In this document: positions 846-42,186 of the stretch, piece by piece
Position numbering within the stretch: position 1 is the stretch's first letter
Layout of the letters: each line of letters begins with the position of its first letter
From: Carpediemonas membranifera BICM
Lineage: Eukaryota > Protista > Fornicata
Length of the DNA stretch: 50,697 nt
Reading direction: 5' to 3'
Assembly (NCBI GenBank): GCA_019828565.1
Contig: JAHDYR010000059.1
Span: forward strand, 1-50,697
Position numbers and translations under genes: made by a program
The notes under the pieces: generated by a model
Databases searched by the model: none
What the model was told of the DNA's origin: nothing
Seen by the model: only the letters and a program-made list of their open reading frames with translations

Positions 846-849
846 GTTG

Positions 850-9546: not shown

Positions 9547-9562
9547 TTCGGAAAGTGATCAC

Positions 9563-9623
9563 TGTGCCGGGGCGAAGAGATTGGAACATTTACATAAACT
9601 GCGGACGTGGATGCCTTATGACA
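9563..9623 (-). repeat. 5' LTR of chromovirus 1 (61 bp)
   Basis: Identical to 5040-5100; gag ATG (9546) lies only 17 nt downstream. Confidence 0.95.
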
Positions 9624-10159
9624 GCAGGTTACCGACGGAGTGGGTAGCTTCTTGCGTCATCCAGTACCTCCGCCAGTCTGCCATGCATCATCCTCCTGGT
9701 GCGCCCCCACTGTGTGGGGAGGGGGTACCCCCTTGCGCGCCGGAGGGATGCGCCGGACTGCTTGTCCGGACGCTTGCGCCCTACTGGCCCAGCTGTTTTG
9801 CCAGGCCTTCCCTATTTCGTGCTTGTTGTATGCGGTTGTCCCTTAGTGGTCCTTTGCAGCCTTCCCTCCGCCTGGCGCTACCGGAACATGTGGTGTTGTC
9901 CTCATTGGTTCCAGGCCCGCTGCGCTTGGGGTCGGTGCTCGGGCCACCTTTCCAGGCCGCCCTGTGGGTTGGGCCTGTCCCCTCTTGGTGGTGGGGGAGT
10001 TGTTTCAAGTGTGATGCAGGCATCAGAGTGCTCCCCTTGCTGCGTGGGTTGGGTTGGGTGTGCGGCCGGGCGCTACCGGAACATGTGGGGGGAAAACACC
10101 TCCCGCCGGTTCCAGGAATGTTCCGCCCTGTGCCTTGTCTTCACCCAGGGCTTTCCTCC

Positions 10160-13100: not shown

Positions 13101-13536
13101 CGAAGCCGTGGTACTCTCTGACGATGTTTTCCAGCTGTTGGTCGAAGCGGTCTAGCTCCGCTGCGCTGCGGTCACTTGGAGGGGCGTATATGTTGATGAC
13201 TGCGATAGCCCTTGAGGTTTCGAGGATGCTAACTTGAACTCGGGGGTTCGTGCCGTCAGATACTCCTACATCCCAGGTTGCCTGTGAATGTGGGCTGATC
13301 ACCGTGGCTACGCCTAGGTTAATCTTGCCCTTTCGAGCCTTGATGGGTTTGGCGTGCCCTGCACATGCGTATTGTAGGTCCGCCCAACAGGGGACTACGG
13401 AGTTACCGTACCTGAATGTTTCCTGCAAGAGGAGGGCGTCCGGGCTCGTGTGCTTGCGAAGCGCTACCGCTATAGATCCGCTGTAGTCTTCATTGCCCGT
13501 TAAGTGTCCTTGGCTGTTAAGGGAGACTATTCGCAT
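10160..13536 (-). pseudogene. LINE ORF2: apurinic endonuclease + reverse transcriptase + C-terminal zinc finger, multiply frameshifted (3' end approximate)
   Basis: APE: MRIVSLNSQG, LLQET, NIYAP, MGDWN, TLDY. RT: GPDGI, SYRPISL, QIGF, LDIAKAYDTV, GVKQGCVVAPTLF, MFVDD, RYLG. CPIC...HIIAEC near 10390-10520. Confidence 0.88.
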
Positions 13537-14191
13537 TCAGGTTGTTACTGCCTTAACCTGCACTCCTTATTCTGCACTACCTGCACACTTTCATCTTGTT
13601 GTTGGGGTTTAGCATCTGCATTGTTGCCTTCCCAATGGGTGAGCGCCTATGTCGTCGTTGTTTAGCACGTTGGGTGGGCCGCTTCCCGCCCTGTGGGTTG
13701 TTGGTGGGCGGCCCGGGTAGGCGTCTTCTTTGCCCTTGATATTTCTCCAGGACCCAGAAGCATGCGCCATTCACATGGGGTGCTTGGCCAGAACGGCTGC
13801 TTCCTCCAGAGTCCCCAGACGTGGCCCAGGTTCCCTCTTGGAGCTGATCTAGGGTGTACCACCCCTTTCACTGGCCGCGCCCTCGCGGTGCTTGTCGGGA
13901 CTTTCGTGCCAGTCTCTATAGCGCTTCTGGCCTCGCACATTGGCAGCATCGTTACCTAACTACGCATAGGTGGGAGCGACTCCTTTCGGCGCCCCTCCCA
14001 AGGCTGGAGTTCCAGCCTGCCGGACAGGCGGGTCCTCGATGGCGTTCCAACTGCCTCTTACCCGCCCCCCGGTCCCTGCGGGGAACAGGGGTTTTAAGAA
14101 AAGAAAAAGTCACCCGGGCATTGGCGCCAGTACAGCCCTTCTGGCGGGCTCCAACGCTGCACCTATTCCGGCGCCTTCACTTCACCTAGTC

Positions 14192-14800
14192 CTACACTAA
14201 CGTGCTATATATACACATCCCTTTAGACTCTGCACTCTTCCCTCCACTGCTTTGGTATGGCTCGTTACTCATGCATCTCTTGATCTGGTTCGTCGCTCTC
14301 GTGCTCCATTCCGATGCGTAGGAGCTCTTCTTCCTCGTCGCTTCCGTTGGCGGCGGCAAGCGCCTCCTCAAGCCTGGCCTCGAGGACTCTGTTTGTTTCA
14401 CGGAGCCTGAGGCTGGCTCTTTGAAGGCCTCCGATTTCTCGGCGATGCGCTGGAGGCGCTGGCGCTCGCTCGCTCCTCTTGCTAGGGCTTCCCTTTCCTT
14501 GGCCAGCTGGCCTTGGAGGTGGGCAACCTCGTTGTTCAGCCGGGAGACTTCCTCTTCGTAATGGCTCATGATCCGCTGCCGCTCTTCTTCAGCTCTTCGC
14601 TCCACCTCCGCTTGGAAGAGGGCTTGGATGTAGGCACCCATCTGATCGACCGTGCCCAGTCTTGGGTTTGGGGGCCTCTTCCCTTCGGGGCCGCCCGGCG
14701 GGGGCCGGTGCTCGAAAGCCTGGCTCAGAGGCATCGCCGGGGGTTGGCCTCTTTGTGAGGCGTGAGGATCGCCTGTCCCGGGGCCGGGTGGGGGGTTCAT
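14192..14800 (-). CDS. LINE ORF1-like coiled-coil protein (probably continues by frameshift toward 13577)
   Basis: Located just upstream of the APE ORF; heptad-rich segment YEEEVSRLNNEVAHLQGQLAKERE. Confidence 0.55.
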   Translation of the reverse strand: MNPPPGPGTGDPHASQRGQPPAMPLSQAFEHRPPPGGPEGKRPPNPRLGTVDQMGAYIQALFQAEVERRAEEERQRIMSHYEEEVSRLNNEVAHLQGQLAKEREALARGASERQRLQRIAEKSEAFKEPASGSVKQTESSRPGLRRRLPPPTEATRKKSSYASEWSTRATNQIKRCMSNEPYQSSGGKSAESKGMCIYSTLV

Positions 14801-14840
14801 CCCTCTGGGAGTGGGGTAAGCAGGGCTTACCTGGTGCGCA

Positions 14841-15900
14841 TTAGGGGTGATGATTGCCCTTGGGGTGGGGTGGGCGGGGGGTTACCTGGCGCGGGTTGGG
14901 GGTGGGGTTTGTTTCCCCTTGGAGCCTGCTGGGGGAGGGGGTGGCGTTCACCTTCCTTTGAGATGGGTTCGGGGTGGGGACCTGTCGGTTCTCGGTGAGC
15001 GGGCCCTCAAGCAGCCCTAGGGCCGGCCACTCCATGCCTTGGTGAATCTCGTTGGTGAGCCTCTCCCGGTGCTCTTCGAGGCAGGCTCTAAGCGCGGCCC
15101 TTGCCGCGGTCACAGCCTCTTTTTGCTCTCGCTGCGACCTGTGCCCGTCGTTGTTCTGGGTGTACGGGAAGTCCCACAGGCGGATGGGGGGTAGTCTCAT
15201 CATGGGACTGCATCCCAGGGCCAGGGTGCCGTCGTATTGGGGTTCGCCCAAGGCGCTCGGGCGGCGTCTTCCAGGCTCCCCTCCTTGTTCTACTGTGCGG
15301 ATGCCCCAGTCTAGGGGAAGAACCGAGGGGAAGAAGTTGACATAATGCCTGGGCCCTCTATCTTGGCGCCGGAGTTCCGCGCTTACGATGAGTTTCGGGA
15401 CGCCCGCTGGTGCTCTATCGCCGATGTTCACCAGGCAGTGGGTGAGCCGGTGTCTCAGCTGCTGGGCTGAGCCCCCATGCATCATGTCATGCTTATGGAG
15501 CGGGACCAGCGAGGCTGCCTGGGATAGGGTCAGGAGCTCGGGGTGGAGTTTGACCGGGAGTTGCTCCATGACCCTGGGGGTCCAGGGTGGTACGGTTGCC
15601 ATAGAAGTCTGGCCAGTAGCCCTTCTCCCTTGCTACGCGGCGCCTACCGTTCCACTCGGATAGGAGCTCCACGACCAGGGGTCTCGTGCTTGGGCAGGAG
15701 TCCGGGCTGAGAACGGCTACGCCCCTCCTTTCAAGGACCCTTAGGATTCCTTTTCCTGTGCTGAACTCTTGCGCGGTCGTGTTGGCCATGTGGATTTCCT
15801 TCGGACGCGGCTTGGTGGTAAAGATCACGTGCTGTAGTTGCCCCCAGGGGTGTGATGACCTCTCGCCCTCTATGGCGGTTGATCTCTACAGCCAGGTCTG
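14841..15900 (-). pseudogene. Additional LINE-internal coding region of unknown function (ORF pieces 15493-15828 and 14841-15602)
   Basis: Consecutive overlapping minus-strand frames following the nuclease; no motif recognised. Confidence 0.4.
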
Positions 15901-15912
15901 GGACCCCGTGTC

Positions 15913-16723
15913 CTACTCTAATGATGGGGCTTTTGTGCCCCCGTCACTTTCCCCTCCTCGTGCGATTAGTTCCGCTCCCACATCAGCCCAGGTCCACGGG
16001 TTATACAGCATGTGGATGGCCAGGGAGAGTCTTGTGTAGAAGAGCGATACATCCGCAAGCGCACAGTGACAGTAGGCTGGTGCGTTTCTGTGATAGGGGC
16101 ACAGCCCCTTGGGTTCCCTTCTCCTTTGCTGGTCGCGGGTCCAGACCTTGGCCTGCTCGGCTGCCTTCTGGTCCTCCTGTGGGAGGGTCTCTCGGACCGG
16201 GCGGTCCTCCTGGGAGGGGGGGTAGAAGAGGGTGAGGGTGCTATTGAGACGGGGGTACACCGCATCTAGGCCGGCTTCATCGATTAGGTGGGTGGCTACC
16301 CATGCCCTGGCCGTGGAATCCGGTACGTATTTGGCGCTCGTGAGGACACTTCGTTCAGCTTCCACCCCTTTGGCAGTCAGGTGGATGAACGCGTTATGGT
16401 GTCCTTCGAGACGCCGGAGGGCATCGATCATTTCCGCGCACCATGTGGTGCTGTTTGGGAATGTGCTTTCGAATCCCTGGGGGCCTGCCCAGTGGTGATG
16501 TCGACGAAGGTGGCTGGGGGCAACCGTGGAGAATTCTTGAGCTCATCAGAGCCTGGTCGAGGTCGGCCACCCGAATATCTTCGCCTAACATCCCGTGCAG
16601 ACTGGCGACGATATTCCCGTTGGCGGGGTCAAAGACTATGACCGCCCCTTCGCATATGACGGCCTCATCCCCCGCCTTGGATGCGGGTTTGGACGCTTCG
16701 AAGTCAATGCATCCGATCAGCAT
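15913..16723 (-). pseudogene. DEDDh 3'-5' exonuclease of Maelstrom / arenavirus-NP type, frameshifted near 16470-16530
   Basis: IDFEA (ExoI DxE), ICEGAV (Zn-ligand E), ILHG, TAKGVEAERSVL, CPYH, and HCALADV (H-C-x3-D). Confidence 0.72.
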
Positions 16724-16930
16724 CCTCTTGCCCTGCGGGTTGGTGAGCGGGCAGGACGGGGGGAGTCTGCTGTTGGCTGACAGTTCTCTACCCCTTGGCG
16801 GGTTGACGTCACTATCACTGCCAGGGACTCTTCTGGCCGAGTCGTCGGCGTTGGGCCGGGGGCCATCTTGGGTACCCCCGGTCTCCGAGCCCGCACTTTC
16901 GCCGCTGGGCATGGTGGCGGGGTTCCCCCG

Positions 16931-17506
16931 CTAGTTGGGTTCCAACCTGCTTCGCCCCCAATGAACGAGGGGGCGACTGGATCGCCCATGTTGGGTTGGC
17001 CAGTAGTCGGGTCGCCGCCGTTGTGCGGGGCAACGCCCAGGTTGCCCCCTGGTGGGTGGGTCCGTCCTTGGGCCGCCGTTGGGCGGGCTATCACCTGCAC
17101 TTGCTCTGCCATTATTCGGTGGGGGGGTGACCGGGTTGCCCTCGTGGGGTGGGTTGTCGGTTTGCTCGTTGCCCTTGGGCGGGCCGTCCCCTGTGGATTC
17201 GGTGGCGAGCAGCTTGGTACCCTGGTCCGCCATCCAGATGTTTGCGATCCTGCTAACGAGGGTGGAAGCGTCGCAGAGGTCCGGGTGGATGAACTCAGGG
17301 GCCGGCATTGGCCGGGTAGTAGTATCCCATGCGGCCCACAGCTCTTTGAAGCCCGGAACCGTCCAGCGAAGCACTAAGTCTTCGGCCTCACTGCGCGCTA
17401 GCTCGTCGCCGGCAATGTTGAGGGCTGAATCCGTGGGTGTCCTGCTAACCAACACAGGTCTGGTCACCCCATCGGTCCTGCTGTAGACAGCTATCGCGGA
17501 GAACAT
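16931..17506 (-). CDS. LINE-internal ORF piece of unknown function, likely linked by frameshifts to its neighbours
   Basis: 191-aa minus ORF overlapping the end of the 17491 ORF; low-complexity Pro/Gly/Asn C-terminus. Confidence 0.35.
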   Translation of the reverse strand: MFSAIAVYSRTDGVTRPVLVSRTPTDSALNIAGDELARSEAEDLVLRWTVPGFKELWAAWDTTTRPMPAPEFIHPDLCDASTLVSRIANIWMADQGTKLLATESTGDGPPKGNEQTDNPPHEGNPVTPPPNNGRASAGDSPPNGGPRTDPPTRGQPGRCPAQRRRPDYWPTQHGRSSRPLVHWGRSRLEPN

Positions 17507-18067
17507 GCCACCTTCCCAGGGCTTGACGGCCTGTCCGTCAAGGGGGGGAAGCCTCCTGCTGGGGGTCTGGGGCTAAGGGGGACGGGGGCATCCTCCCAGG
17601 CCCGACCTAGGGCCGCCCACTTGTTGTTGACGTTGTTGTGGGCTCTGTCCGCACCTGGCGCTTTCGCTGAGCCGGCTGTGGCTTGGCCGCCTGCCTTGAG
17701 GAGCCAGGCGGCGCTCTGCTGGCCGAACCTTGTCCTGATCCCAGGCCCTGTGAGGCTTTGGTGACCTGCGGCCTTGAGAGTGCTGGCAACTAGCTCGAAC
17801 AGCAAGGATCTAGCCGGTGGCGGGCTTGATACCTTGAAGTTGGCGGCGTTATCCCTCGAGAAGATCACTGTGGTGTTGTTGCACTTGGCGAGGATGGAAT
17901 CGGCTGCTCTTCGGACTTTTTGCCACTCTTCGGTCGTAGCTAAGCGTTTTCCAAGCTTGGTGAGCTCTGTTCCAGCTTCGTCTACATCATTCCCCCGGCC
18001 CATGGCTTGTTGGGGGAACTTTGTGTTTGTGGCCGAAATTGGTCTCGAAAAGTCGGAGGGGGAAAGT
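17491..18067 (-). pseudogene. 3' half of a LINE ORF interrupted by the DNA transposon (5' half 30200-30738)
   Basis: Removing 18070-30199 plus one CG gives an in-frame 371-aa ORF (...PGDSCR|LSPSDFSRP...). Confidence 0.75.
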
Positions 18068-18069
18068 CG

Positions 18070-18117
18070 CATACTGTTAGAATGGCCAGTTAATCCGGGG
18101 ATATACGGAGGATAAAC
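18070..18117 (+). repeat. Left TIR (CATACTGTTAGAATGGCC...GGATAAAC)
   Basis: Perfect inverted match to 30152-30199. Confidence 0.95.
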
Positions 18118-18181
18118 ACCCTTTTGCACAAGAAACTGCAAGAAAAAATGAGATTCACCCGTATCTTTTTCACTATTTCAC

Positions 18182-18207
18182 ACGTTTCACCAACGTTGGT
18201 GAAACGT
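18182..18207. promoter_or_regulatory. Perfect 26-bp subterminal palindrome ACGTTTCACCAACGTTGGTGAAACGT
   Basis: Self reverse-complementary; a related sequence occurs at ~29283-29319. Confidence 0.6.
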
Positions 18208-18341
18208 AGAGAAACGTGCGGAAGGTACGGGTAAGTCTCATTTTTGCTTGCATACGACGTGCTAGGGGCATTCTTGTGATTCGTAGGTAGGTGCTGATGT
18301 TGCATAACCATTCATTGCTTATTCAAAGTGATAATAACGTG

Positions 18342-18557
18342 TTAGTGGTCTTTAAGTTGCTGTATTACATCTATAAACATATCTCCTATCTCTTCCAGAA
18401 CGTGTTGTGTGTCATTCAGCCTCTCATTCACCAAAACCTCGCAATTCAGCCCAGTGATGTGATTTCGTATTTCTCGAACAGAATCTTGTATCTTGCCGAC
18501 TTCATGGAGGCAACTGGTCATATGATTAAGCCTTTCGTTCGTGGATAACCGGAACAT
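18342..18557 (-). CDS. Small helical/coiled-coil cargo protein, unknown function
   Basis: ATG-started ~71-aa ORF (MFRLSTNERL...), divergent from the PHD gene, amphipathic pattern with NERLN repeated. Confidence 0.4.
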   Translation of the reverse strand: MFRLSTNERLNHMTSCLHEVGKIQDSVREIRNHITGLNCEVLVNERLNDTQHVLEEIGDMFIDVIQQLKDH

Positions 18558-18591
18558 TGTCGTCAACACCTGCGCAGTTTAAGATGAGAAT

Positions 18592-19812
18592 ATGACGACC
18601 AGTGAAACTGCGAAGAAAGCTGAGATTTCGCAGGGCACGTCTTGCGGATCGGATAAGAGAACAGAGTACCGCCGGCTGTTCGTGACTAGCTTCCTGGAAT
18701 GCTTTTTCGACGTCGCGGACATCCCAACTATCGGTCTGACGACCTCTGACGTTCATCGCGCTCTCCTTGGCATGCAGGATGTGATATCGGGCCTCTGCAA
18801 CGGCTTTCGCAAGATTGCTATTGCAAACTCCGTCAGGCGCACGACTACTGAGCCCATTCAGGCATTTGTGGCAAGTAGAAAGGGTGGCACAGAGCTCATT
18901 GGCACAAAGATACCCTACCTGGTTGTCAGAGACAGAGCAAATGCAGCTGAACACTTGCAGGAGTTTAGAAACAGGATGTCTGTGCTGTTTCGGGGACTTG
19001 GACTCCACGATGTCTCCAGTCTGATCACTTGCACCGGCATTCAATGGCCTCCAGCCGTTGTAATCAGGATCAAGCATCGCAAGCTCCAGCCTGAGCCACG
19101 TACCCCAGCAGAAACACCCGCAGAGACACCCACAAAGACTCCAGTGACAACATTGGTACCAAAGCTCAGAAAAAGAGCTGACTTGGCTACCATCAAGCCT
19201 GATTCCCCCGTCAAGAAGCTTAATTTTGATGCGCAGATGCATGAGCCTGCTCAGAAGCGATCGAGGCTCGAAGAGGCTGACTTGAAGGAGGTTGCCGCGA
19301 TGGTGACGGCTTCACTCTCCACAACTGTCACTGATCTCCTCAAGCAGTCACCCAAGGCCGTTGAAATGAACGATAAGGTCCCCGCCCTCAAGCAAGCGAC
19401 GTTTCTGAAGCTATATCAGCGTAAGTTACTGTTCGCATGCGCTGTTTGTGCCTCACCTGAATGGTACTTCAACCCAAACATGAAAAGAAACGAGTATGAA
19501 ACGTGCTATCTCTGCCATCAGTTCATGCATCTTCAGTGTGTCAGAGAGAAGAGGATTGATGGTAAGAACAGAAAGGTTTGCGCAGCTTGCAGTCTGGCAG
19601 GAAGGTCTAACAGATGTCACGCGTGTATCAAGGACGGAGACAAGTCGACAAAGGACACTGGCGTCTGCCGGTCGTGCCTAAACTGGTTCTGCGAAGAGAA
19701 ACACTTCAGCTATGCTGAGTTCCATCTCGACGGCCAGGACTATCGTGTCAGGTTCTGCGACCAGTGTATGACTGTCTACCAGAAGGTGGCGGATATGAAG
19801 CCAATTGAGTAA
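18592..19812 (+). CDS. PHD-finger protein with a second Cys-rich finger
   Basis: CAVC-x-CYLC-x4-H-x2-C-x-CAAC fits C4HC3; followed by CHAC..CRSC-x4-C-x3-H..CDQC; central TPAETP repeats. Confidence 0.8.
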   Translation: MTTSETAKKAEISQGTSCGSDKRTEYRRLFVTSFLECFFDVADIPTIGLTTSDVHRALLGMQDVISGLCNGFRKIAIANSVRRTTTEPIQAFVASRKGGTELIGTKIPYLVVRDRANAAEHLQEFRNRMSVLFRGLGLHDVSSLITCTGIQWPPAVVIRIKHRKLQPEPRTPAETPAETPTKTPVTTLVPKLRKRADLATIKPDSPVKKLNFDAQMHEPAQKRSRLEEADLKEVAAMVTASLSTTVTDLLKQSPKAVEMNDKVPALKQATFLKLYQRKLLFACAVCASPEWYFNPNMKRNEYETCYLCHQFMHLQCVREKRIDGKNRKVCAACSLAGRSNRCHACIKDGDKSTKDTGVCRSCLNWFCEEKHFSYAEFHLDGQDYRVRFCDQCMTVYQKVADMKPIE

Positions 19813-19835
19813 GATAAATAGGGAGATTTTGAACT

Positions 19836-20861
19836 TTAAGTGTCTTCCAGTGCCGCTCTGTGCGCAACTGTCATCTCAGTAATGTAGCGCGAGGCCATAA
19901 CATCCGCCGGAGATCTCTGCAGTGGTCTATATGCAAGTACCTCAGAAACAAGGTCGACCATCTCGGGAAGAGGGATTGGCGTGCGGAACTGAGTGGCTGT
20001 GAGGATCTCAATCGCGCCCGGGGTTATGGACATTGATCCATTCGCGATAACCCGTCTCCCTGCTGTGCCAGGTGCGAGCCCATAGCCGGAGAAGTAACGC
20101 GAGACGAAGTGGAGCGGGTTGTCCATGCATGTAGTGCGGTAGAGCCAAAAGCAGTCCTGCAGGACGAGTTCGTTGGCAAGCATTTTCTCCGGAGTGAGAA
20201 TGATGCACGTATGCTCGTATGCCTGGGTCGAAATGGACTGCTTAAGCAGAGAGAACTCGCTATTGTCCGCTCCGGTACAGGTGGCGAAGTAGATGAGCCG
20301 AACCCGGCTGGTGGTGACGAGGGATGGCTCACGGAAAGCGAAGAGGATCATCTGTACGATATCGTGAAGGTACAGGAACTCGTTAGCGCTCGCATTAACG
20401 ATCATTCTCGACGTTGTGGTCTCGCTGTGGCCAGAAACAACCCAGAATGTCTCGAAATTGGCGAATTCTGCAGCCAACTGTTGCAGTATGGAGCCGAGGT
20501 GGGTCGTCGAGACGAAACTGACGGCAACCGTGGTGAGCCACTCGTCGCTGACGAGATCGAGGATGGCCTTCATGCGCTTGTGGTACCCCTCGGAGCCAGC
20601 AAGCCCGGTGACAGTGAAGACCGGGTTCGCACAAGTAGGTGCTTCGAAGCCATGGACTGGCTCGAGCAGGATAACGATGCGGCGGTTCACAAGCTTGCTC
20701 AGGGTGAAGGGGCAGTCATGCGTGTACCTGATTCCGTCATATTCCTTCAGGCCCTGGTTGCGAAGGTCAGAACGCGGCCTAGTGATTCCACAGACGCATT
20801 CATACGTGAGAGGATGGTCGCTGATGCGTCTGGTACCGAATTTGCCAAATTTCCTCTCCAT
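19836..20861 (-). CDS. Caspase/CHAT-like (clan CD) cysteine protease, putative
   Basis: Hydrophobic strand + GH (FWVVSGHS), then ~50 aa later hydrophobic strand + C (RLIYFATC), the His-Cys dyad layout of the caspase-hemoglobinase fold. First ATG at 20861. Confidence 0.62.
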   Translation of the reverse strand: MERKFGKFGTRRISDHPLTYECVCGITRPRSDLRNQGLKEYDGIRYTHDCPFTLSKLVNRRIVILLEPVHGFEAPTCANPVFTVTGLAGSEGYHKRMKAILDLVSDEWLTTVAVSFVSTTHLGSILQQLAAEFANFETFWVVSGHSETTTSRMIVNASANEFLYLHDIVQMILFAFREPSLVTTSRVRLIYFATCTGADNSEFSLLKQSISTQAYEHTCIILTPEKMLANELVLQDCFWLYRTTCMDNPLHFVSRYFSGYGLAPGTAGRRVIANGSMSITPGAIEILTATQFRTPIPLPEMVDLVSEVLAYRPLQRSPADVMASRYITEMTVAHRAALEDT

Positions 20862-21045
20862 TTGGCAACTACCACTTTTTTTCCAACACTGGTAGTTGGC
20901 CGAACCAGCTATAGGGAAGGATATGGACCACAATAAGCAAGCATTCTGGTGTTACAGATAAGATATTGTATGTGTGTCCTTTACGGTGTGAGACGGCCCC
21001 ATCAATCCCGAGAAATACCGCGTGTCCGTTTGCAAAAAAAATCAG

Positions 21046-21855
21046 ATGGCGAGAAGAAAGGCGCTCCCACCAAAGCCGCAGCCTGGGGGTATCAGAATAC
21101 CCATTACGTCCACTGCGGGCAAGACGCCGCCGTCTGCGCCTTCAAATGATTCTCAGGAGGATTCCTCAAGCGAAGATTCCATCATTGAATCCGTTGTGCA
21201 TACTCAGGCACTGCATCCGGATCTGGTCGCCGCGATCTACCCAAACACTCCCGAGGAGTCGATCAGGGAGCTTAAGGAGGCCGAGAAGGACCTTCCTCCC
21301 CTCGAACCCCCCGAGTTGGTTATCCACCCGGCTGACCCACCCCTCCATTGCCGTTGAGGTGCAGCCTTGTCTGGCTCCCGACCACACGGACGTGGGTAGA
21401 GGCCTCATTGCAACTGCCGCAATTGAGCCCGGAAAGCTCCTCGGCATTTACGCCGGTAGGATTGTGTCCGACGAGGACTACCACGCGAATAACAGCAACA
21501 TGGTGTTTGTTCATTGTTCATTATGCCTTTACACAGCATTTCATTCGACGCTAGCAACCTTCACGTCGACGCCGGCGAAGGTGAAGGCATTGGTGTACAC
21601 CTCATCAACCACAGTGAGAGTGACACCAACTGCCAGTTCACCAACCGTTTGCTCAAGGACCTTCCAGTCCTTGCGGTTGAGTCGACGAACGTCATTCAGG
21701 CCGAAGAGTTTCTTCGTATCAGTTACGGCGAGATCTTCTTTGATGCGGGTGAGGTCTTAACCATTGCTAGGTTCCCGAGTCTGCCCATTTCTCATCCGAA
21801 CTATCTCACAAGGTTCCTGGAGCAGTATCCGGCACTCAAGAAGCGGAAGAAATGA
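21046..21855 (+). CDS. SET-domain methyltransferase; +1 indel ~21337 and 32-nt intron 21505-21536
   Basis: GRGLIA, IYAG, VDA, INHS, EEFLRISYG SET motifs across three frames. Removing GTTTGT...TTACACAG restores the frame (NMVISFDA). Confidence 0.85.
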
Positions 21856-21881
21856 ATTAAAATGTCAAAACATCTCTTTTT

Positions 21882-24058
21882 TTACTCGGGAACTCCACGC
21901 TTAACGTCCTCGGCATCAACAACTCTCTTTTCGCGATCCTTATCGACTGCCTTGCGCTTGATATAAGTCGTATGAGCCTTTCTCTTACCACCCTTTGAAC
22001 GTTTGCGGACAAATAGCGTCGCATGCTCATCCTTGACGACCACAATAGCTTGCGCCGCAGCCACATCTTCATCAGATCCACGCCGGACCATGCCGGACTC
22101 ATAAACTTCCGTCAAATGCATCCGCACAATATACTTGTCATGGTACGTCAACATCTTGACCCAGATAACGACTACAGTCTTGCTCTTCAGAGCTGACCAG
22201 GCCATGACACCAAAGTTGCTGTACCAATCAGTGGCATCGTCGAACATCAGGGTGGGCACGAACACGTTAGACGTCTCAAGCCTCAGCCTCTCGCCAGCAT
22301 CGGAGAATCCCCAGGCGCGCACCTCCTCCCTCACTGCTGCCACTTCCTCTGCCGCAAACTTCTTGTCGAACTCGCCATTCTCAACCTTCTGCAGGCAGTA
22401 GCCGATGCACAATCCATCCGGGTTGACTGCAATCTTCCGCCAACTCTTACGATCTTTGAGAACTCGCTCGCCTACCTTGTCGTACTCCACGTCGATGTAC
22501 TTCTGCCTATCAACGTCGCTCCGTAAGTATATCTGCATATGGGGAACATTGGCAGGCGTCGGAGAGTGCTGTTTGATGATAGCCTTCATCTCTGGCGACA
22601 GACCGAGGTCGAGAGGTGGGACCGTTATGAACTTCTGGCCCCCGTACCTCATCATGGTGCTATTGATCCGAGTCCATAAGGCTCCAGTCACATTGTTCCT
22701 CTGGAACAGTACCATCAAGGCAGCGAGAGGAACGTAGCGGTCAAGCTCCACTGTTGCCTCCTCGGCGCGCCTGACAAGCTCAGCCCAGTTGTCCTCGAGT
22801 TCATCGGCGAGCGCTTCAAGCCCAGCCTCACTCGCGCGTGCCAACTCTGCTTGAGTAAACTGATGGATCGCCTGATCCTCGGCCTTCTGCTGACCTAACT
22901 CAGCTTCAAGTCTCTTCTGGGACTCCTCAGACTCTCTGTTAGCCTGTTCAAGCGCCTCCCTCGCCTCCCTCTCCTCAGCAAGCCGTTTTATCAAGGGCTC
23001 GTACTGCTCCAACAAGCGCACAGACTCAGGGACATCATCAAGGCCTGCAATGGTGTCGTCTAGCTGCTGAAGGAGAGAACCAACGGTGTCTGTGTCGTCC
23101 ACATCAGACTCTACGTCGATGTCTTGATCAGTCTGGGGCAAAGGAACGCCGTCACCCTGCATGGCGGCCGGTTCAGAGTGGCCATCGGACTCGGACTCGT
23201 CAGTGTCGGAAAATTCATCGTGTGTCGTGGACTCTGCGTCGACAACCGGAAGCGGCTGAGGGGCAGCAACGACGGAAGAAGGCTTGGTGGCTGCTGCTGA
23301 GCGATCCTGGGCCCGGACTAACTCCTCTTGGACCTTCATCAGAGCAGCAGTCGATGAGGCGAGCTCCTTCTCAAGACGAGCGATCTTCCTCTTCAGAGGA
23401 GCTGACGGATCGAGCGAACCGATCTTAGCCAACTCCTCGGCCAGCTTCTCTGAGCCAGCGAAGGACAGCTTCTTGCTGAGCTGGGCGTGGGCGATAAACT
23501 GGCCAAATTGGCCTGCCGGAACACGAGAATCGAGTTTCTTCGAGTCCTTGTGGCGCAACACAAGGTGGAATGCGCGGTAAATCTCAACCTGCTTCTCAAC
23601 AGGGGAGCGAGTCGACGCCGACTAGAGCCTTATGAACAGATTTGGCGGTGAAGTGGTCACAAAACTTCCGTCGGAATGCCTCAATTGTGTCGGGAGAGTC
23701 AAAGTCGACCTCGCAGAGGTAGTTGCGGTTAGTTGCGTCACATATCGCGCGTAGTTTGGCAACTCCATAGTCGTGAACGTGCTGGCTTAAAGTGCGCTTC
23801 AACGGGAACCCGAAAACAACGTTGATCGTACGAATGCTGATCAGACGGACGCAAACGAAGAACAGAGGGTCATCAGAGACGATGCCGTGATCTTGCAGCC
23901 AGGTTATACGGCTCTTTGTGGACGAAAGGGCGTCGTATGCACGGAATGAATCATCTGTGTAAATAGGACCGTGAAAATGAAAGTGACATACCAGAATCGT
24001 CAGGAGCAAGCATTGTCTCCTTCAGTTTGCCGAGAGAGATGATGTCTTCGTTAACCAT
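21882..24058 (-). CDS. Coiled-coil protein with C-terminal OTU-like cysteine protease; 37-nt intron 23955-23991 and +1 indel at 23602-23605
   Basis: VNPDGLCIGYCL (OTU DGxC), conserved W (DWYS), C-terminal DEHATL His. Removing GTATGT...TTACACAG joins MVNEDII... in frame. Basic NLS-like tail. Confidence 0.75.
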
Positions 24059-24257
24059 TGTCAATTTGGTCCTCAGAAGACTTTCTCGAAAAATGAAATA
24101 CGTTTTATCTCAATAAATATTGCCAGCTGTCATGTAAATACCTCCGATCAGCCATAAAGACCCAAGAGCTACCCCCTTGGCCGATTTTCAGCTCATTCTG
24201 CACCTGCGCTGTTTTGGCCGTTTTTCGATGGGCATCTCATCGCTCCATTTTCGATTT

Positions 24258-24322
24258 TGTCAATTTGGTCCTCAGAGGACACAGATTAAATTTTTCAGTG
24301 TCCTCTGAGGACAACATTGACA
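24258..24322. repeat. 25-bp imperfect inverted repeat; a third (direct) copy at 24059-24081
   Basis: TGTCAATTTGGTCCTCAGAGGACAC versus GTGTCCTCTGAGGACAACATTGACA. Confidence 0.7.
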
Positions 24323-24362
24323 GGATTTGTAGCTTATCCATGGCCAGAAACTGAAATCGCTG

Positions 24363-24413
24363 AAAAGCTCAGAGACGTCGTTATATCATCTATAACGGCA
24401 TCTCTGAGCTTTT
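24363..24413. repeat. Hairpin-forming inverted repeat (23-bp arms, 5-nt loop)
   Basis: AAAAGCTCAGAGACGTCGTTATA-tcatc-TATAACGGCATCTCTGAGCTTTT, two differences between arms. Confidence 0.75.
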
Positions 24414-24738
24414 GGGCGCACGGTTTCATCCTGACGTGGAGATCGATGGTGGTGAAAATGAAGAATTGACTAGGAGAGCTCTACGCTTGCATGCAGCCTT
24501 CTATTAGGTTGTTGATGTTGGTTATATGCTTCTTTTTCGTTCTCGATGCGTGTGGATGAGTATTCTGTTGCAAGATTCATTTTGATGGACTGATGTTGGT
24601 TATAGAGGATAAAGGCACCAGAATGGATCATATGCATGCTATAAACCCGTTCTGTGCCGTTGGAATACCATAGCTGCGCAGCAATGTCGAGAGTCACAGT
24701 TCATTTCACATTTTCACACGCATTTTAAGGAAACAACG

Positions 24739-25501
24739 ATGGCAAGAAGTAAACAAGGCAATATACAGGCCACTGAAGCTCAAAAGGAGAGGAGAATGGC
24801 TCTTGGCAAGAAAGCGCAGCAAAAAGAGCCAGAGCAAGTCCAACAAGTCCACGAAAACAGCCCGAAAAGCTCACAAGACGCCCATCGAGATCGTTCAGAC
24901 CTTTATCAGCAATTTCCTCCTTAATAATGACGATATTACCCGCGCAAACGGATGGGTTGTCGACTTCAGCCAGAAGTTTGCCGCCGAGGTCCCTAAAATG
25001 AAAGTAGCCTCCTTGAAGAAGGACAAGCTCTACGGCAATCTCCAGTCGGTCGAAGAGATCAGCCGCAAGTGGCAGGGAGGCGGTGATGAGGACAAGCGTC
25101 ACCGCTTCAAGGCTCTCCTCAGTCTTGACGCCCAGACAGATGAGCTGGACACGGACGACCCACTCATCGCGACTGTCCGCGAGATGGATGATGCCTTTCA
25201 CCGCATTCCCATCGCCTACCGGGCTAAGGTCCATGCCTTCGCTGCTTCATCGTGCGGTGTGACGGTCGATGACGTCAAGCTCGTCCTGAGCAAGCCTTGC
25301 CGTGACCGCGACGCGGATCTCATCTTCGCCAGACCCACCAGAGTTCTGAAGAAGGAGGCTAAGACACTCAGTCAGCTCACTTCTGTCATTGCCAAGCGGA
25401 ATGCGGAACGTGCTGAGGCTGAATCGCGTGATGTGCTGCGTCGCAAGGTATACCAAGCCATCATGAATTACTACTTAGAGTGTTCGGCACAGGAGCTATA
25501 A
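24739..25501 (+). CDS. Basic protein with histone-H3-like N-terminus (MARSKQ...KTARK); +1 indel near 24800
   Basis: ATG ORF 24739 overlaps the 24803 frame by a one-base shift; K/R/S-rich tail followed by a helical domain. Confidence 0.6.
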
Positions 25502-25525
25502 ATTCTTGTTTTATTTTCATTTCAT

Positions 25526-26451
25526 TTACACTTCTTCGTCATCCTCAACGGAAATATTCCATTCACTGTCCCAGAAGTTGGCTTTCTTCTCCTTACGCAT
25601 CTCGGTCCTCGTTTCCTTGATCTCTTTGACCAGCGTGAAAGAACGAAGGTTGTAATGGCGGATAATCATCAACTTCTGCCTGATTCGGGTGACGTTAGGC
25701 CGTTTTGCCGCACGTTCACGGCGCACGGACACACGGGTGCGTTCCACGAACGAGTCAACACTCCTCTTGTCGGAAGCAGGCATCCCATGAGCGTGCTGAT
25801 CAAGTCTATTACCATGGTTGGTCACGCGGATCAACGTAGAGCCTTGCATTATCATCCCACAGCACTCTGTCAGGCTCTTGCCGAGGTTGGTCCACTTGTT
25901 GGGACCCATCGTGCCCTCCATCGTGACAATGGCAAGTGGGTTGCCCCCCGTGTCCACCAGCTGCTCGACCTGCGACGGGTCCGATGACTCCTTGAGGCCA
26001 AAGGACGCATACATGTCCTGGAGTCGCTTGTCGCACTGCAGTCGGACGAGTTCTTCGGCAGATGCTATGCTAAGAAGCACCCTCGCGAACCCAAGACCTC
26101 TGCAGGAGACGGCTGTCCGTAAGCCGATGACAAACCGCTCCTGGTGCAGTTGTCCGCTCAGGGTCTGCCCCTCCCTGTACGACTCGCGGAAGAGAAGGCA
26201 TGCAGCCTTGATGTTGTCCATCTCAACCCCACGAATTGCGATGAGACTGTGTTAACAAGAAGTGTAGTGGGTCTGACATACATGACGAATGAGTAGTTCA
26301 GACAGTCGAGGTTCGAAGTCGCCAGATCTCTGTTGAAGAAGGCCCTGACAGACGGCAAGAGCTCAGACTTGTCTGAAAGCTTGACATATTGAATATAGGC
26401 CTTGTGTTGCGATAAATTCATCGTCAGCCATGTCGGAAGTGGCGTTTCCAT
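25526..26451 (-). CDS. GNAT-family acetyltransferase; 35-nt intron 26247-26281
   Basis: Acetyl-CoA motif A (LRTAVSCRGLGFARVLL) and motif B (QDMYASFGL). Removing GTATGT...TTAACACAG fuses METPLP... in frame with MDNIK... Confidence 0.78.
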
Positions 26452-26573
26452 TGTTTTTCACCAAACAAGTGACGTAATGTGAAAATTGTGAAACTACCAA
26501 TGTTGAAAAAAAAATTGGTAGTTGGGGAAACACACCAAATGGGATGTACTGACCAATAAAACTCCTTTACTCA

Positions 26574-29113
26574 CTACTCAGCGCGTGCATGACCGCAAAT
26601 GCAGCAAACAAGCTCCTCACCCATGTCTGCCAACTCGCAAACCATCACCCCAGACTCTTCGTCCCATGCCAAAGCCGTATAATCGTTGACGTACTGCCAC
26701 ATCTCGTCAACGAGCTCCTGGAAGAGGCGCACCACCGCCGCCGTGGCATGGAATTGGTGCCTTGCCTCCATGTGGCTGCGAATGGCGAACCATGAGCGAG
26801 CTTGTCTGCAGCATTGGTGGACTCGGACACGACGAAGCCTGTTCAGCGGGGGGGACTGAGTAGTCCTGGCGACCGAACGAGCGAATACCCGTTAAGAACG
26901 TGCAGATGAGGGTGGTCTGCTCGGTCAAACACAGCTTCTCGATCATGGCCGACCTGTGCAACTCGGCTCGGACCTCCTGGTTCTTGATGAACTCTCTCTC
27001 AAAGAACTCCTCGAGGAGGTAAAAAAAGAGGAATGCGGAGATGATCGTGAAGAAGAGGCTGGGCAGTGAGCCTGCTGTTGACATAGAGTGTCTGGGCACA
27101 TGGCTTCTCCGCCTTGTATGCTTGCCCAGGAGGGAGCAACGCCAGCTTTGTCTGGTGTGCCTGCAGACTGAGCATGACGTGGAACAGGTGGCACATGGAC
27201 GCGGCCAAGAAGTGGAATGCGACTTTGCTGTCGGTGACAGGCTCGGTTGAGTAGTAAAGAGCCTGGAGATAGCCAATGAGTCGCACAATATCTTGGACGG
27301 ACTCAGGAAGAGCCTCGTAATCCTCGTTCGTGGTGTTCGCCATGCGAACTCTGGCAGCAGACTGCTCGTTGCACCCGACAGTGCGGTCAATACTGCGGTT
27401 GGATGACATGCGCTGGAGCTTGCGCTTGTCTACGGCAGTTGCGTTCCGATCAGCGGGGAAGCTGGCGCATAGCCGTGCCACTTGCTCGAGCAGGCGGTGC
27501 GAGTTGTGCATGATCGGAGGACAAAAGACAACTCGCTCCGTGTGGATGACTCGGGGCTCTGGCCGGTTCTCGAAGATGGCCCTCTTGTCGGAGAAGTTGC
27601 CATACTCCTCTTTCGGGTCCTGCACACGGTCGGGGTCGGCCTGCACGGCGTGGAACGCTGCCTTCTGCTCGAGCAAATCATGCAAGGTGACCCGAGAGTG
27701 CGCCGGAATGGGGTGCAGCGCCTTGTGGTCTCGACGGATGCTGTTGAAGGGCTGGGGATAGTGCCCTCCATTACCCTCGATGCCGGATGACAGCTTCCTG
27801 ATGGCCGCGTGATCGCCCATGACGATGACTTGGTCGAAGGTGGTGACCTGGTCAGTTCCTCTGATCGGTATGAGGGCTTGATAGATCCGCTCGACTTCTT
27901 CCTCAACGAGTTGAAGGTTTCCCTCCTCCGTCAGCTCCTTCTCACCGGCAAGACACTCAACGAGTCGGAAGGGGGGAGTGATGCGGTTAGGGAACGTGAA
28001 GCCTGACGGGTCGTAGATGCGGATCTTGAACGTTGCGGTATGTCCCTTCCATGCGTCGAGCCACAGGAGTAGTTTTAGTGGTTGGAACTCGACATGGCCT
28101 GGGTCCTGAAGGGCACGAGAGCAACGCTCGAAGTTCGTCTGGTCAGACTCGAGCCACTCCGGGTGAAGCACTGCCTGCTGCAGATAGTACACGCCATCGA
28201 ACCACACCGTTTCCACCTTGTCCCAGGTCGAGCTGTTCAGTCGCTTGCCCAGATGGGCGATGCCTACACTGCCTTTGAGGGACTGGTAGTGCTGGACAGC
28301 GTCGGATTCGCTGTCATAGTGGAGGGTGAGCGTCGGTCGCTCCCAAGTGTGGTCGGCGACGAGGTCGTGGTCGAAAAACGGAGTCGGCTCGGCTCCGTCG
28401 GCTACAGTCAAACGGTTCGTGAGCTCAAGTCGCGACTGCGTGCCGGACATGGTACGCCGCCATGTTGTATTGCCTGAGACCGACCTGCACGGCACGAGAT
28501 GCTTGACGAAGGCGCGCTCCTCCTCAGTGAGGGCCTCTGAGACACCAGATATTCTGGTCATGTCAATGCCAAGGTCCTTAATGAGCACCTCCGCGGTCTT
28601 GTTCTTCGAGATCGGCTTTCCAAGCCGGCGGGAGATGTTGTTGATGAGCTTAAAGAGCTCTTGGGTCGAGTTGAAGCCATTGCGGACGTACATCAGGATC
28701 GATGTGAGCTCCATGATCTCAGAAAAGTTGGCGGAGCGCTCCTCTGAGTCGTTGTAGTCCTGCACAGCACGCTCCTGGATGGCGTGGGTGCGGTAATCGT
28801 CCCGTACGAAGACAGGGTGAGGAGGGTGTTGATTTCCGTGTGCGGTTGCGGCACGTTGGAAGGGACGGGAGTCTGCTGGAGGGCGGAAGAACCTTGCGTC
28901 GTGAATGCGCTGGGAGATCAGGTCCGCCTCCTCCATCTCGCGGACGAGCTGGCAGAATTGCTCGCGCTGAGGTCTTGTTCTGGCGGAGTTGAGGCCAATT
29001 CCGACCATGGCGAAGTAGGTACAGCCAAGAAGGTAATTCATGCGCTCAACTGAGCGTGGCTGGTCATCATATATTGTACCGATGTGGCTCTCGAACACAA
29101 TATGAGCAACCAT
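26574..29113 (-). CDS. DDE transposase related to Transib/RAG1/Chapaev (CMC); two +1 homopolymer indels (27021-27027, 26848-26854)
   Basis: D1 LLWLDAW; D2 MGDHAAIRKLSSG..GHYP; PPIMH. After indel correction, TLYVNSRLTAQP...LLEEFFE parallels RAG1 TNYFHKTLAHVP...SEGNE. Largest gene inside the TIRs. Confidence 0.7.
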
Positions 29114-30151
29114 GATTTCTGTAGAGTTTAAAAAAACAAGATTTTTGTACAAAAACTAGGCAGGTACATGCGCAACGGTCTGTGAGATAAATCAGACAAT
29201 TTGGCTGTTGCTATAGCTCTATAAGAGCAGCTACAACTGCGCTGCCGGGGTTCCTTCTTCTTCTCTGGCCGTTTCAACACTATTTCACAATTTCACCAGT
29301 TTCACACAATTGGTGAAACAATGTTCAGAACTCCTTCAGTTTATGGACGTTGGCTCCGAAACTAAAAGCAGTGTGTGTATGAGAGTGCCTGATTAAGATT
29401 CATCTGATTTTCATCTGCATTACTTGCGAATTTGCTGTTGTGCTCCTTGTGCACAAAAAAAGCAAATCTGGATTTGATCTCGAATATTGCCATGATGAAG
29501 GCGACACAAAATGCTCATTTGCCAACCAGTGCAGCTAGAAGAAAATGGTAAAAAGTTATGGATACTGCATGGGATGAGGCCCCCGTTGATGTGTTAAACG
29601 GCCATGATCGACCGCTCAACGTCAGCGCCTCTTTGGGCACCTTCTGCGGCGGTGGATCATGCCAATTGCCGATCTCAGCTCTATGGAGCTAAGTGCACTT
29701 GAGCTCTGAGCCAAGTCTTCTGATTCCATCTTATCGCCGATAAAAAAATTGCAAATTTTGAGATACAGAAGATTGAATCTGTCCCCCAGAAAACCGAACA
29801 TACTCCGATGATGTATACTGACTATATACCACCGTAGTATGGCCTGCTTTCTGGGGGACAGCTTCATTCTTTTGATTGGTTGATTCAGTCATTAGTTCCC
29901 GGCGACTGAGAAGGAGTTGACGCATAAAAACAACAGAGGATACTCTTTAGAACACACAGACTTTGCTGACAAGGCCACTTGGTCGTACGACCACTTTTGC
30001 CTTCGACCTTAAAATGCGAGAGGCAATTTGCTCGACCACCAATCTCGCACATGTTACATCAAGCATGGATATGTCATTAATGCACTCGCATCTATCATTT
30101 CAGCTGCTTCTTAGGACTTCGAACGCCCTGAAGCACGAATAAGGAATTTGC

Positions 30152-30199
30152 GTTTATCCTCCGTATATCCCCGGATTAACTGGCCATTCTAACAGTATG
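30152..30199 (-). repeat. Right TIR
   Basis: Perfect inverted match to 18070-18117. Confidence 0.95.
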
Positions 30200-30738
30200 C
30201 GGCATGAATCCCCCGGAGGGGGAGCCCTCCCTGCCCGCCTCGCCTGTAGGCGCCGTTGCCGGCGCTCGTAGGCTGGGAAACCCGGGGTCAGGGAGTAATC
30301 GGCCTTGGAGGTGAACATCACGAAGGCCGGCCCGCATCGGGGCAGTGGCCGGCGCTGTTGGTCCTCGCGGTGGATTTTCCAGGCCGCCTGGCTTACCCAC
30401 CATGGCCTTCCGGTTATCAGGGCGTAGTGGTATAGCAGGATGTCATTTTCTAGCATTTGGGTAGCCGTTATTTCCCTTTCTCGGCTGGGATTCTGCCACC
30501 ACTGTAGCTGGTGATCCACTCCTGGGGGGAAGGGATCCTTTATCTTGCTATACCCTTTTAGGTCGCCGTACATCCGGATCAAGTCGGCGATTTTCTCGGT
30601 TCTCGTGCGCTCCTTGCGTAGAGGAGGCCCTATGGGATGCTCGGGGAGGAGATCTTCTGCTCGGGCAACGTACCCGCCCTGTGGGTTCCTGGGAAACGCG
30701 TCCATTGCCGGCCGGTGGCTCGGATGAGGAGGGTGCAT
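30200..30738 (-). pseudogene. 5' half of the LINE ORF interrupted by the DNA transposon
   Basis: MHPPHPSH... reads into the TIR at 30199 and rejoins 18067 in frame. Confidence 0.72.
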
Positions 30739-31646: not shown

Positions 31647-32451
31647 ACACCCAGGGTTGAATGGGGGGTTGAGACCATGTTGCTGCTGTTCCTTGCGGTA
31701 TCTGCCTACCACTCGGGTTGCTGGGCCCCGGCATTCTCCCCCTTCTCCCAGCGGGGAGCGCGGCCACAGGGCGCCATTTGGGTTTCCCTCCAGTTGCGCG
31801 TCATTCCTACTAAATTCATGAGTTCATACCTTGGTTTCGGCTTGGTTGCAGTGGTGAGGGCCCTTGGCATGTTGCTGGGGGCTCCTCTGGACGTTCTTTG
31901 CCCTGTGGGTTGAGGAACGTCCGGGCGGTAAGCTTCCCTTGGTCTTTTGGATGGTAATATCCCATCAGACCGCTCACCGGGGGCTCCATGCCCATACGGG
32001 TTTCGTTGCCCCAGAGGGTGCACTTTAGGGAGCACAGAGAACCAACCCAAGCACAGCGCCCGTCCGCTAGCGGGTTATACAAGGCAGGCAGGGTGGTTTC
32101 AGGGGCGACGGCTCGTGCCTCCGGCGCTCGCATCTTCCAGTTTTCTGCCACCGGCCCGTTTCGCTTCCGTTTGACTTGGTCTCAGGCGATCTCATCGAGG
32201 AGGCTAGAGAGAGGCCTCGTGCGCCCTATGGGTAGAAGTGGTAAAGAGTTATGCTGTTCCTGCTGGTATTCCCCGAGCAGGAGAACTCCCGATGCTGAAT
32301 TGACCAAAATGTGGCATTCCGCGCTATAGGTCACCGCCGCTCTGTTTTGAGCTCTATAAACCACGAAAGAATCGCCAATGGCTATCATTCCTCGGCGCTT
32401 GGCTTTGTTCCGGTTGGTGATTCCAACTTTCCATACCGGACATTTTAACTG

Positions 32452-32466
32452 CACCTTCCAGCTAGC
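32452..32466 (+). repeat. Right copy of the 15-bp LINE TSD
   Basis: CACCTTCCAGCTAGC, identical to 4393-4407. Confidence 0.92.
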
Positions 32467-33400
32467 GCTTAGCTCCAACGCCCTTGCTCATCTCGACCCC
32501 GGCTCGGCACGCACCGTTGCAGGCTGGGTAGCAAAGTTCGACAGAACACGAGATCGCCACCTTGACTGCGCAACACAGCTGGAGAGCTTCCTGACAGAGG
32601 AGGGCCGAACGTGTGGCCCCCAGAACGTGGCCCGGAAGGGCTATTGGATCAGACGGCTGGAGGGGATACTCAGCGACTGGACGCCGCCACTATTCGCGGC
32701 CAATATCGTCAGGAAAGCGAAGAAACGCGCCACTACCGCAGGCATCACTGGCGGGGCCCGCCCGATTTGGAAGAAGGAGTTCCGCGACGCCCTCGACCGC
32801 CGGGAGGAAAGCTTCGAGAAGTACCAGGCTCTCCTATTCAGTGCGCTACAGCTCATCACCATCTCCCGGCCCGGAGAGATCCTTAAGCTGACCAAGGCCG
32901 ACATCAGATTTGACCGGGAGTCACATGACGCCATCCTACGCATCGATAAGACCAAGACAATCCTCGGCGGGGTAGAGAAGAGAGTCCCCTTCATGTACGT
33001 AGGCACCTTCAACCCAGCCCTCGCCCTACGCTGTTGGATCAATGGACAGCCCAAACTCCATTCGAACACACCTATCTGGCGCAGGATAGTCCGGGGCAGA
33101 CTTAGCAGAGACACCCCCCTCTCGGCGGCGACACTTAGGAGACAGATCAGAGCCATCTTAGGCGAGAGGGCTTCGCTCCACAGCTTCAGAAAAGGTGCGG
33201 CATCGGAGCTGCTCCTCGCGGGGGTTGGTATCGAACGCATTGTACACCTCGGGACCTGGAAGGACCCTAACTCACTCCGCCCATACGTCGCCCACGCCAT
33301 CCGCACGAACCCCACCCTATCGAGGCAGGTGGCCGGCACGCTGCTGGCGAGGAGGATTATTAGACGGAAGGACAACAGAAACAAGCATACCAAGCATTAA
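32467..33400 (+). CDS. Tyrosine recombinase of DIRS-like element A (separated from its RT by the LINE)
   Basis: SRPGE (R), KTK (K), HSFR (HxxR), GTW (W), RPY (Y). Confidence 0.92.
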
Positions 33401-42040: not shown

Positions 42041-42164
42041 TGTCAGGGTCCTACCCATTGTTTACATAGTTGATATATTTATTATTGCCATATTTACCAC
42101 AGCAGGGTCAAACCCTCTCTTCTTTGCTTTTACTAAAAGTTCTTCTAAGTCTTGACAGACCACA
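42041..42164 (+). repeat. 5' LTR of chromovirus 2
   Basis: TGTCAGGG...GACCACA, AT-rich core. Confidence 0.95.
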
Positions 42165-42186
42165 ATACTAGTATTCCCCTTTCATC

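Follow-up and report, generated by a model that had tools for sequence, protein, structure and literature searches.

Transposons of the CMCT clade (EnSpm/CACTA, Mirage, Chapaev, Transib/RAG1, Plavaka, ESTA and Lanisha) commonly have CA..TG ends, target-site duplications (TSDs) of 2–5 bp and transposases with C(2)C and H(3-4)H zinc motifs (PMC12730594). They are the closest described systems to a 12-kb transposon at positions 18070–30199 of the window, by which we mean the whole 50,697-nt contig JAHDYR010000059.1 of the free-living protist Carpediemonas membranifera BICM (assembly GCA_019828565.1). This element shares with the clade the CA..TG ends, a 2-bp TSD within the range, and putative spaced D..D..E motifs with a conserved His between them; it differs in having neither zinc motif, no Pfam or PDB profile match, a 2-bp TSD of any sequence, and six cargo genes. 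The PlavakaB elements of fungi have TSDs of 2–3 bp and CATCA..TGATG ends, near the CATAC..GTATG of the window element, and some carry a TET/JBP epigenetic enzyme, whereas the cargo here differs. RAG/ProtoRAG and TransibSU (PMC4411706) have broadly the same type of transposase and are likewise encoded with a PHD-finger protein, but the TSD of the window element is 2 bp, Kelch, Chapa and RING domains were not detected in it, and the likeness is at motif level.

Single cargo domains of the kinds described below have precedent. Intact SET genes are found in the HarbingerS and MuDR elements of Phytophthora (PMC12730594), and intact OTU or SET genes in Helentrons and proto-Helentrons (PMC4067079), but the transposases of these elements are unrelated to the one here, and each carries one or two such genes, as against predicted PHD, SET, GNAT, OTU and clan-CD protease genes in the window element. 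VANDAL elements with VANC and fungal transposons with TET/JBP follow a similar proposed logic, in which the anti-silencing factor comes with the element itself; theirs is a single factor against DNA methylation, whereas the predicted kit in the window points to protein modification. Our literature searches yielded neither a transposon that combines PHD, SET, GNAT, OTU and a clan-CD protease nor a description of the window family, and the main text of the genome paper does not mention transposons (PMC8516963). What appears to be new is the gene combination, which the initial annotation, made from the sequence alone, had likewise not recognised.

Element ends, insertion site and transposase

The element lies within a retroelement ORF (open reading frame), and its boundaries are as follows (TIR, terminal inverted repeat; LINE, long interspersed nuclear element).

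17491–18069, minus strand: interrupted ORF of a multicopy LINE-like retroelement, 3' part
18068–18069, no strand: left TSD, CG (a single CG in the empty sites)
18070–18117, plus strand: left TIR, 48 bp, starting CATACTG
30152–30199, minus strand: right TIR, 48 bp
30200–30201, no strand: right TSD, CG
30200–30738, minus strand: interrupted LINE ORF, 5' part

The two TIRs are 100% complementary, and CG stands outside both as a 2-bp TSD. Once the element and one CG are removed, the LINE ORF reads through 371 codons with no internal stop, and 17 other copies of the LINE are empty sites, in which the flanks from the two sides share exactly 2 bp. The empty sites and the restored frame together indicate a recent and precise insertion. 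A 27-nt TIR pattern had 46 matches across the C. membranifera genome (reversed control, 0); nine pairs of TIRs enclose 11.8–12.1 kb, and nested insertions lie within many of the other pairs. Searches with gene A and exon 2 of the SET gene located ~23–25 loci of the element, whose copies are ~99.5% identical to each other. The outer dinucleotides differ across ~19 insertions, the TSD having been read on both sides in two copies (CG/CG in the window, GT/GT in the C38 copy). The perfect TIRs, the CG duplication, the in-frame restoration and the single discrete insertion claimed in the initial annotation are thus all borne out, and the checks it had named, a genome-wide TIR search for copies with other 2-bp flanks and a search for LINE copies with the empty site, both returned what it expected. 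All the features of a TIR cut-and-paste element (TIRs, TSD, dispersed copies, empty sites) were found, and 18070–30199 is a young cut-and-paste TIR DNA transposon of C. membranifera. An assembly artefact as the source of the element was rejected on the precise recent insertion, the empty sites and the dispersed copies. The host LINE is present in at least 18 near-identical copies and has an APE endonuclease downstream (12913–13536).

In an alignment of 14 homologues, the transposase motifs are W-x-D353 (28055–28057), D434 (27812–27814), PPxMH536 and EExFE (701–705), with D353 and D434 nearly invariant and E701, E702 and E705 invariant; the DDE triad was assigned from motif spacing. Pfam and PDB profile searches with this alignment were empty, and none of the 14 homologues had a Plavaka Pfam match. 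No C(2)C or H(3-4)H motif could be found in the window transposase from the second D up to the E in the alignment; only P0026, the most distant homologue, has the C(2)C and the H(3)H motif complete, and in most relatives they are half-kept. The termini are CATACTG in the window element and its outside relative L048, CAC in the L049 family and CAT in L053, and the TSDs observed (CG, GT and GC) fall inside the CMCT range. These features fit a transposase that would work like a CMCT (EnSpm/Chapaev/Transib/RAG1) enzyme without the zinc motifs, whose absence keeps it from being filed as a canonical member. Transib TSDs are 5 bp long, so Transib proper is ruled out by the 2-bp TSD; ESTA, with a TA-only TSD, is not matched either, as the TSDs vary here. 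The best explanation appears to be a new, divergent CMCT-like lineage of autonomous-type cut-and-paste transposon. The Transib/CMC-like label given initially therefore holds at the level of motifs, ends and TSD range, but not for the zinc motifs or for Transib proper.

Cargo genes and their predicted products

The genes of the element are listed below, with lengths in amino acids (aa).

18592–19812, plus strand: gene A, 406 aa, PHD
19836–20861, minus strand: gene B, 341 aa, putative clan-CD (caspase/CHAT)-like cysteine protease
21046–21855, plus strand: gene C, predicted short SET methyltransferase without post-SET, N-terminus MARRK; 32-nt GT-AG intron at 21505–21536
21882–24058, minus strand: gene D, ~710 aa, N-terminal domain, acidic/coiled-coil middle and C-terminal OTU-like protease; OTU part ~21966–22523, Cys codon 22407–22409, predicted intron 23955–23991
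24739–25501, plus strand: gene F, 253 aa, without known domain, N-terminus MARSKQ (H3K4-mimic pattern)
25526–26451, minus strand: gene G, 296 aa, predicted divergent GNAT acetyltransferase, intron 26247–26281 (NCBI spliced model P0006)
26574–29113, minus strand: DDE transposase, ~846 aa, intact in the C7 and C42 copies

The domain calls could be examined with outside-only profiles, which were built solely from relatives' proteins and ranked over the 725 ORFs of the window. The expected ORFs came first in each case: both exons of gene C with the SET profile (E 5.5e-6 and 0.0018), gene G with the GNAT profile (E 1.9e-4) and gene D with the OTU profile (E 2.4e-4). Failure of such searches had been named beforehand as the outcome that would speak against the calls. 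In Pfam, spliced genes were searched exon by exon and gene G as the public NCBI protein. Gene C matched SET at E 0.003–0.03 per exon, below the Pfam cut-off because the exons were scored separately; its GxG, NH(S) and terminal Tyr motifs are present alongside the SET profile match. Gene A matched PHD_4 at E 0.004, also below the cut-off, and satisfies the C4HC3 pattern: an N-terminal part without an assigned domain precedes a PHD finger of C4HC3 type and another, PHD-like cluster of Cys, and 15 Cys and 1 His are invariant across 5 homologues.

The GNAT, OTU and caspase/CHAT proteins of the window had no Pfam match and are supported by their relatives, by invariant catalytic motifs and by look-alikes in the Atlas. 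For example, gene G has motif A (V-x4-R-x2-G-x-G/A) and aligns with Pfam-positive GNATs of related elements, those from outside elements exceeding the Pfam cut-offs. In the OTU part of gene D, the D-G-x-C loop and a distal His are invariant in 4 homologues, the Atlas OTU look-alikes score 0.92, and the best PDB matches, weak ones (E 0.03), are nairovirus-type viral OTU chains; neither gene D nor its relatives' proteins matched a Pfam OTU family. Gene B, the best-conserved cargo gene, has an N-terminal CxC..HxC motif, and its G144-H145 and C195 are invariant in 6 homologues at 23–58% identity, with the His-Cys dyad following hydrophobic strands. Its Atlas look-alikes are DUF6642/CHAT proteins (0.85–0.91); the PDB profile search was empty, and PHROGs and PADLOC gave nothing. 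Judged from these comparisons, the SET, PHD, GNAT and OTU calls appear well supported, and that of gene B as a caspase/CHAT-like protease moderately so. An AlphaFold model of gene G (single sequence, pLDDT 39) was unusable, and the fold matches of this model and of that of the transposase (helical bundles, ferredoxin-like) were artefacts.

The product of gene F, initially described as an H3-tail-like protein, is like H3 in its first 4–6 residues only, and the remainder has no known domain. Genes C (MARRK) and F (MARSK) both fit the iM-small-R-x-K H3-mimic start pattern, which occurs in 48 of ~21,000 human proteins (PMC8166343). Among 172 long-ORF N-termini of the loci compared they alone begin M-small-R-x-K, a count made post hoc and for a pattern in which basic nuclear proteins may be enriched; the start codons of both genes are predicted. 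The earlier tally of six protein/chromatin modifiers was overstated: the cargo has four putative enzymes, a reader and, in gene F, a protein whose N-terminus is like H3K4.

The frame breaks at 21307, 23602, 24821 and 26848 are homopolymer errors; they are missing from most copies, and two of the four are also missing from RNA-like contigs. They correspond to a surplus C in the run 21307–21312 of gene C (an assembly error, not in any RNA-like run), a surplus G in the run 23602–23605 of gene D (whose 712-codon frame is open in 5 other copies), a surplus A in the run 24821–24825 of gene F (whose frame is intact in 20 of the 26 copies, as in the RNA-like contigs) and the run 26848–26854 of the transposase, which is broken in the window at 27021–27027 as well. 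The 32-nt intron of gene C is removed in every RNA-like run compared, and the contigs of two runs start at 21044, 2 nt upstream of the gene C ATG. RNA-like contigs report presence only, and two of the four runs resemble one data set.

The element also contains palindromes.

18137–18252, no strand: subterminal imperfect palindrome, 58-nt arms, 78%
24258–24418, no strand: two hairpin-type palindromes between genes D and F (z -7.2)
29766–29874, no strand: subterminal imperfect palindrome, 52-nt arms, 79%

A 17-bp word at 24357–24373 recurs exactly in L053 (1504–1520, 1319–1334) as an inverted pair that lies upstream of the OTU gene in both elements (BLAST E 2.4e-4 among 28 comparisons). The transposases of the two are 27% alike. 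The word is a candidate binding site.

Related families in Carpediemonas and other genomes

A transposase profile search of 1.84 billion proteins returned 21 relatives, several of them outside C. membranifera. The outside transposases (L048, L049, L050, L053 and L054) are 23–27% identical to that of the window and interleave with the Carpediemonas ones in a quick tree, from which the lineage appears to be old and diverse. L048 (GCA_002919055.1), an element 11.6 kb long and complete, sits in a long terminal repeat (LTR) retroelement; its ends are CATACTG and its duplication is GC, and it carries OTU, gene B, SET and PHD genes and one gene without assignment. L049 has PHD, RCC1-like, kinase, OTU, SET and B genes and one whose product begins MARSKQ; the RCC1-like and protein kinase genes (L049:782-3863) lie between the PHD gene and the other kit genes and are probably extra cargo. 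L050 has two SETs, GNAT and B, while the metagenome contigs L053 and L054 have OTU, GNAT and PHD, and GNAT, respectively. Homologues of gene A occur in L048, L049 and L053 besides the sibling families; for gene F no homology to outside-element genes was established (best shuffle p 0.04). The same gene kinds beside such distant transposases show that the set is conserved, not accidental: as judged from sequence, the lineage has kept PHD, SET, OTU, GNAT and a putative clan-CD protease with their catalytic motifs over ~75% transposase divergence, with the order shuffled. Scans of IMG/VR viral contigs found no relatives of the transposase or of gene B, and of two metagenome scans one was empty and the other returned PPCM01 contigs only. 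The L053 element is apparently inserted into the transposase gene of a related L054 element (L053:7066-7120 and L054:2849-2903).

Within the Carpediemonas genome, sibling families were judged mostly from coordinates and identities, the window family being Fam1. Fam2 and Fam3 have all or nearly all of the genes in unchanged order and orientation (for example at C35:112-122 kb and C19:2.7-13 kb). Identities to Fam2 are 55–57% for the transposase, 35% for A, 57% for B, 50% for SET, 36% for F and 35–46% for G, and a homology search of the genome gave no Fam2 match to gene D; for Fam3 they are 48%, 29%, 48–51%, 40%, 34% and 32%, with D partial. A fourth group has A at 32%, B at 22–24% and a different gene order. 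Residues ~20–250 of gene F are 34–36% conserved in the siblings. In the PHD half of gene A, non-synonymous divergence (pN) between Fam1 and Fam2 is 0.39 and synonymous (pS) 0.80, and pooled copies within Fam1 have 54 non-synonymous changes over 5690 sites and 41 synonymous over 1699, a ratio of ~0.4 with assembly noise included. This comparison, also suggested initially, shows purifying selection on the predicted cargo. Every match to the six cargo genes in their own genome lies in a cluster that is multicopy and element-like. Capture of single-copy host genes, the outcome set against the initial proposal, was rejected.

Residues 212–494 of gene D are 80–96% identical across families that are otherwise 22–51% alike, while the OTU end differs. 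Two loci (C1:1457773-1462626 and C19:20546-25099) are apparent chimeras, with Fam3-type A, B and SET and D segments that are 96–99% Fam1-like. Five tandem ~11.1-kb units at C67:745094-793906 (L023, L030, L031, L036 and L039) each consist of element positions 2080–12130 and ~1 kb of Tc1/mariner-like DNA, and represent either segmental amplification or mis-assembly. A Fam2 element with left end CATACTGTAAGAATGGC sits within gene D of a Fam1 copy (L004:5444 onward; C38:95955). The annotated protein P0007 (J8273_8449; L001:874-2041) joins a retroelement ORF to the 3' part of gene G, a chimera that is an annotation artefact of a nested insertion. On both sides of the window element (1–17500 and 30200–50697) lies a nest of young retroelements, with a chromoviral-type LTR element at 5037–9623 and another LTR element at 42039–47342; a tyrosine-recombinase ORF (32378–33400) and additional reverse transcriptase ORFs are also present in the window.

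Possible roles of the cargo

We lean towards the view that the cargo is a long-kept accessory kit that keeps the element's chromatin permissive, that is, a self-licensing or anti-silencing function. The transposase would cut at the CA..TG ends, the PHD protein (gene A) would read histone H3 tails, SET (C) and GNAT (G) would write methyl and acetyl marks, OTU (D) might strip ubiquitin off histones or element proteins, and the protease (B) might cleave a protein of the host or of the element. The two proteins that start with A-R-x-K (C and F) could be H3K4 decoys or docking tails. In combination, the element's own chromatin would stay open for transcription and transposition. The MARSKQ start of the L049 gene is consistent with this, and transposon-borne epigenetic counter-measures have precedent in VANC, in TET/JBP and in the SET genes of HarbingerS and MuDR (PMC12730594).

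Several observations weigh against self-licensing. In the SET relatives, the His of the NHS motif is substituted. L048 is complete yet has no GNAT, and the cargo subsets vary among relatives, so that only the transposase is universal. Over the 6 kb compared, RNA-like contigs span gene C, the greater part of F and D at its 3' end, with none for genes B and G. The AlphaFold model of the transposase (2 sequences, pLDDT 32) was unusable, its fold-search matches being artefacts. The 7-A run at 27021–27027 shifts the transposase frame five codons before EExFE in 12 of 16 scored copies, whereas at the other homopolymer runs the most frequent length is the one that keeps the frame; this means either a majority of non-autonomous copies or a systematic error in the reads. 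The T7A site was considered for a programmed -1 frameshift, which was rejected because +1 is required to restore the frame. In addition, SET, GNAT and OTU enzymes frequently modify non-histone proteins.

A less probable alternative is that the kit serves transposition itself: PHD would steer the transposase to marked chromatin, the enzymes would modify, stabilise or process element proteins, and the A-R-x-K tails would be internal substrates in place of host histones. RAG1-type enzymes have a PHD partner, RAG2 (PMC4411706), the OTU of Helentrons has been proposed as a transposition aid (PMC4067079), the insertions observed here and in L048 lie in other transposons, and two element proteins bear their own H3-like tails; however, gene A has no match to a Kelch propeller, and five distinct types of modifier are many for a self-contained circuit. 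It is rather improbable that the cargo is instead a virus-like module for host control or addiction, in which SET would repress host genes, and OTU and the protease would disable host defence or be lethal to cells from which the element is lost. The short vSET of chloroviruses represses host genes in this manner, the Atlas clusters nearest to the OTU part are mostly Nucleocytoviricota, the top PDB matches are viral OTUs, and the genes are compact with small intergenic gaps. Yet the look-alike taxa, according to the Atlas, do not show transfer, the genes contain spliceosomal introns, the transposase and gene B have no IMG/VR relatives, and no polymerase, capsid or packaging ATPase was found in the window. 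A Polinton or endogenous virus does not fit: no DNA polymerase, capsid or packaging ATPase was found, and the TSD is 2 bp, not 6 bp. Passive cargo, with host genes captured as in Pack-MULEs and of no use to the element, is very improbable. The segment swapped between families (gene D residues 212–494) and the extra kinase and RCC1-like genes of L049 are what it would predict, but no single-copy parent of the six genes was seen in the genome, over deep divergence the ORFs have stayed intact, the catalytic residues invariant and pN lower than pS, and the gene kinds conserved in L048–L054 largely refute it.

A more far-reaching form of the self-licensing view can be offered tentatively. The element could represent a new superfamily-level lineage of RAG1/Transib type that has lost the zinc site, with a complete and modular read-write-erase circuit on H3 that is targeted by the conserved word. 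Such a mobile epigenetic operon might combine the PHD reader, the SET and GNAT writers, the OTU eraser, the clan-CD protease and H3K4 decoy tails, and license its own chromatin.

Known counter-defence by transposons consists of single genes, chiefly against DNA methylation. Five gene kinds kept over deep divergence suggest instead that, in metamonad-type protists, several enzymes are engaged in an arms race with the chromatin of the host. The families offer predicted SET, GNAT, OTU and clan-CD enzymes, small and divergent, that could be assayed directly, and the branch without the zinc site may be useful for tracing the evolution of RAG1-type transposases and of their partnership with PHD. In C. 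membranifera itself, a visible part of the 24-Mb genome consists of the related families.

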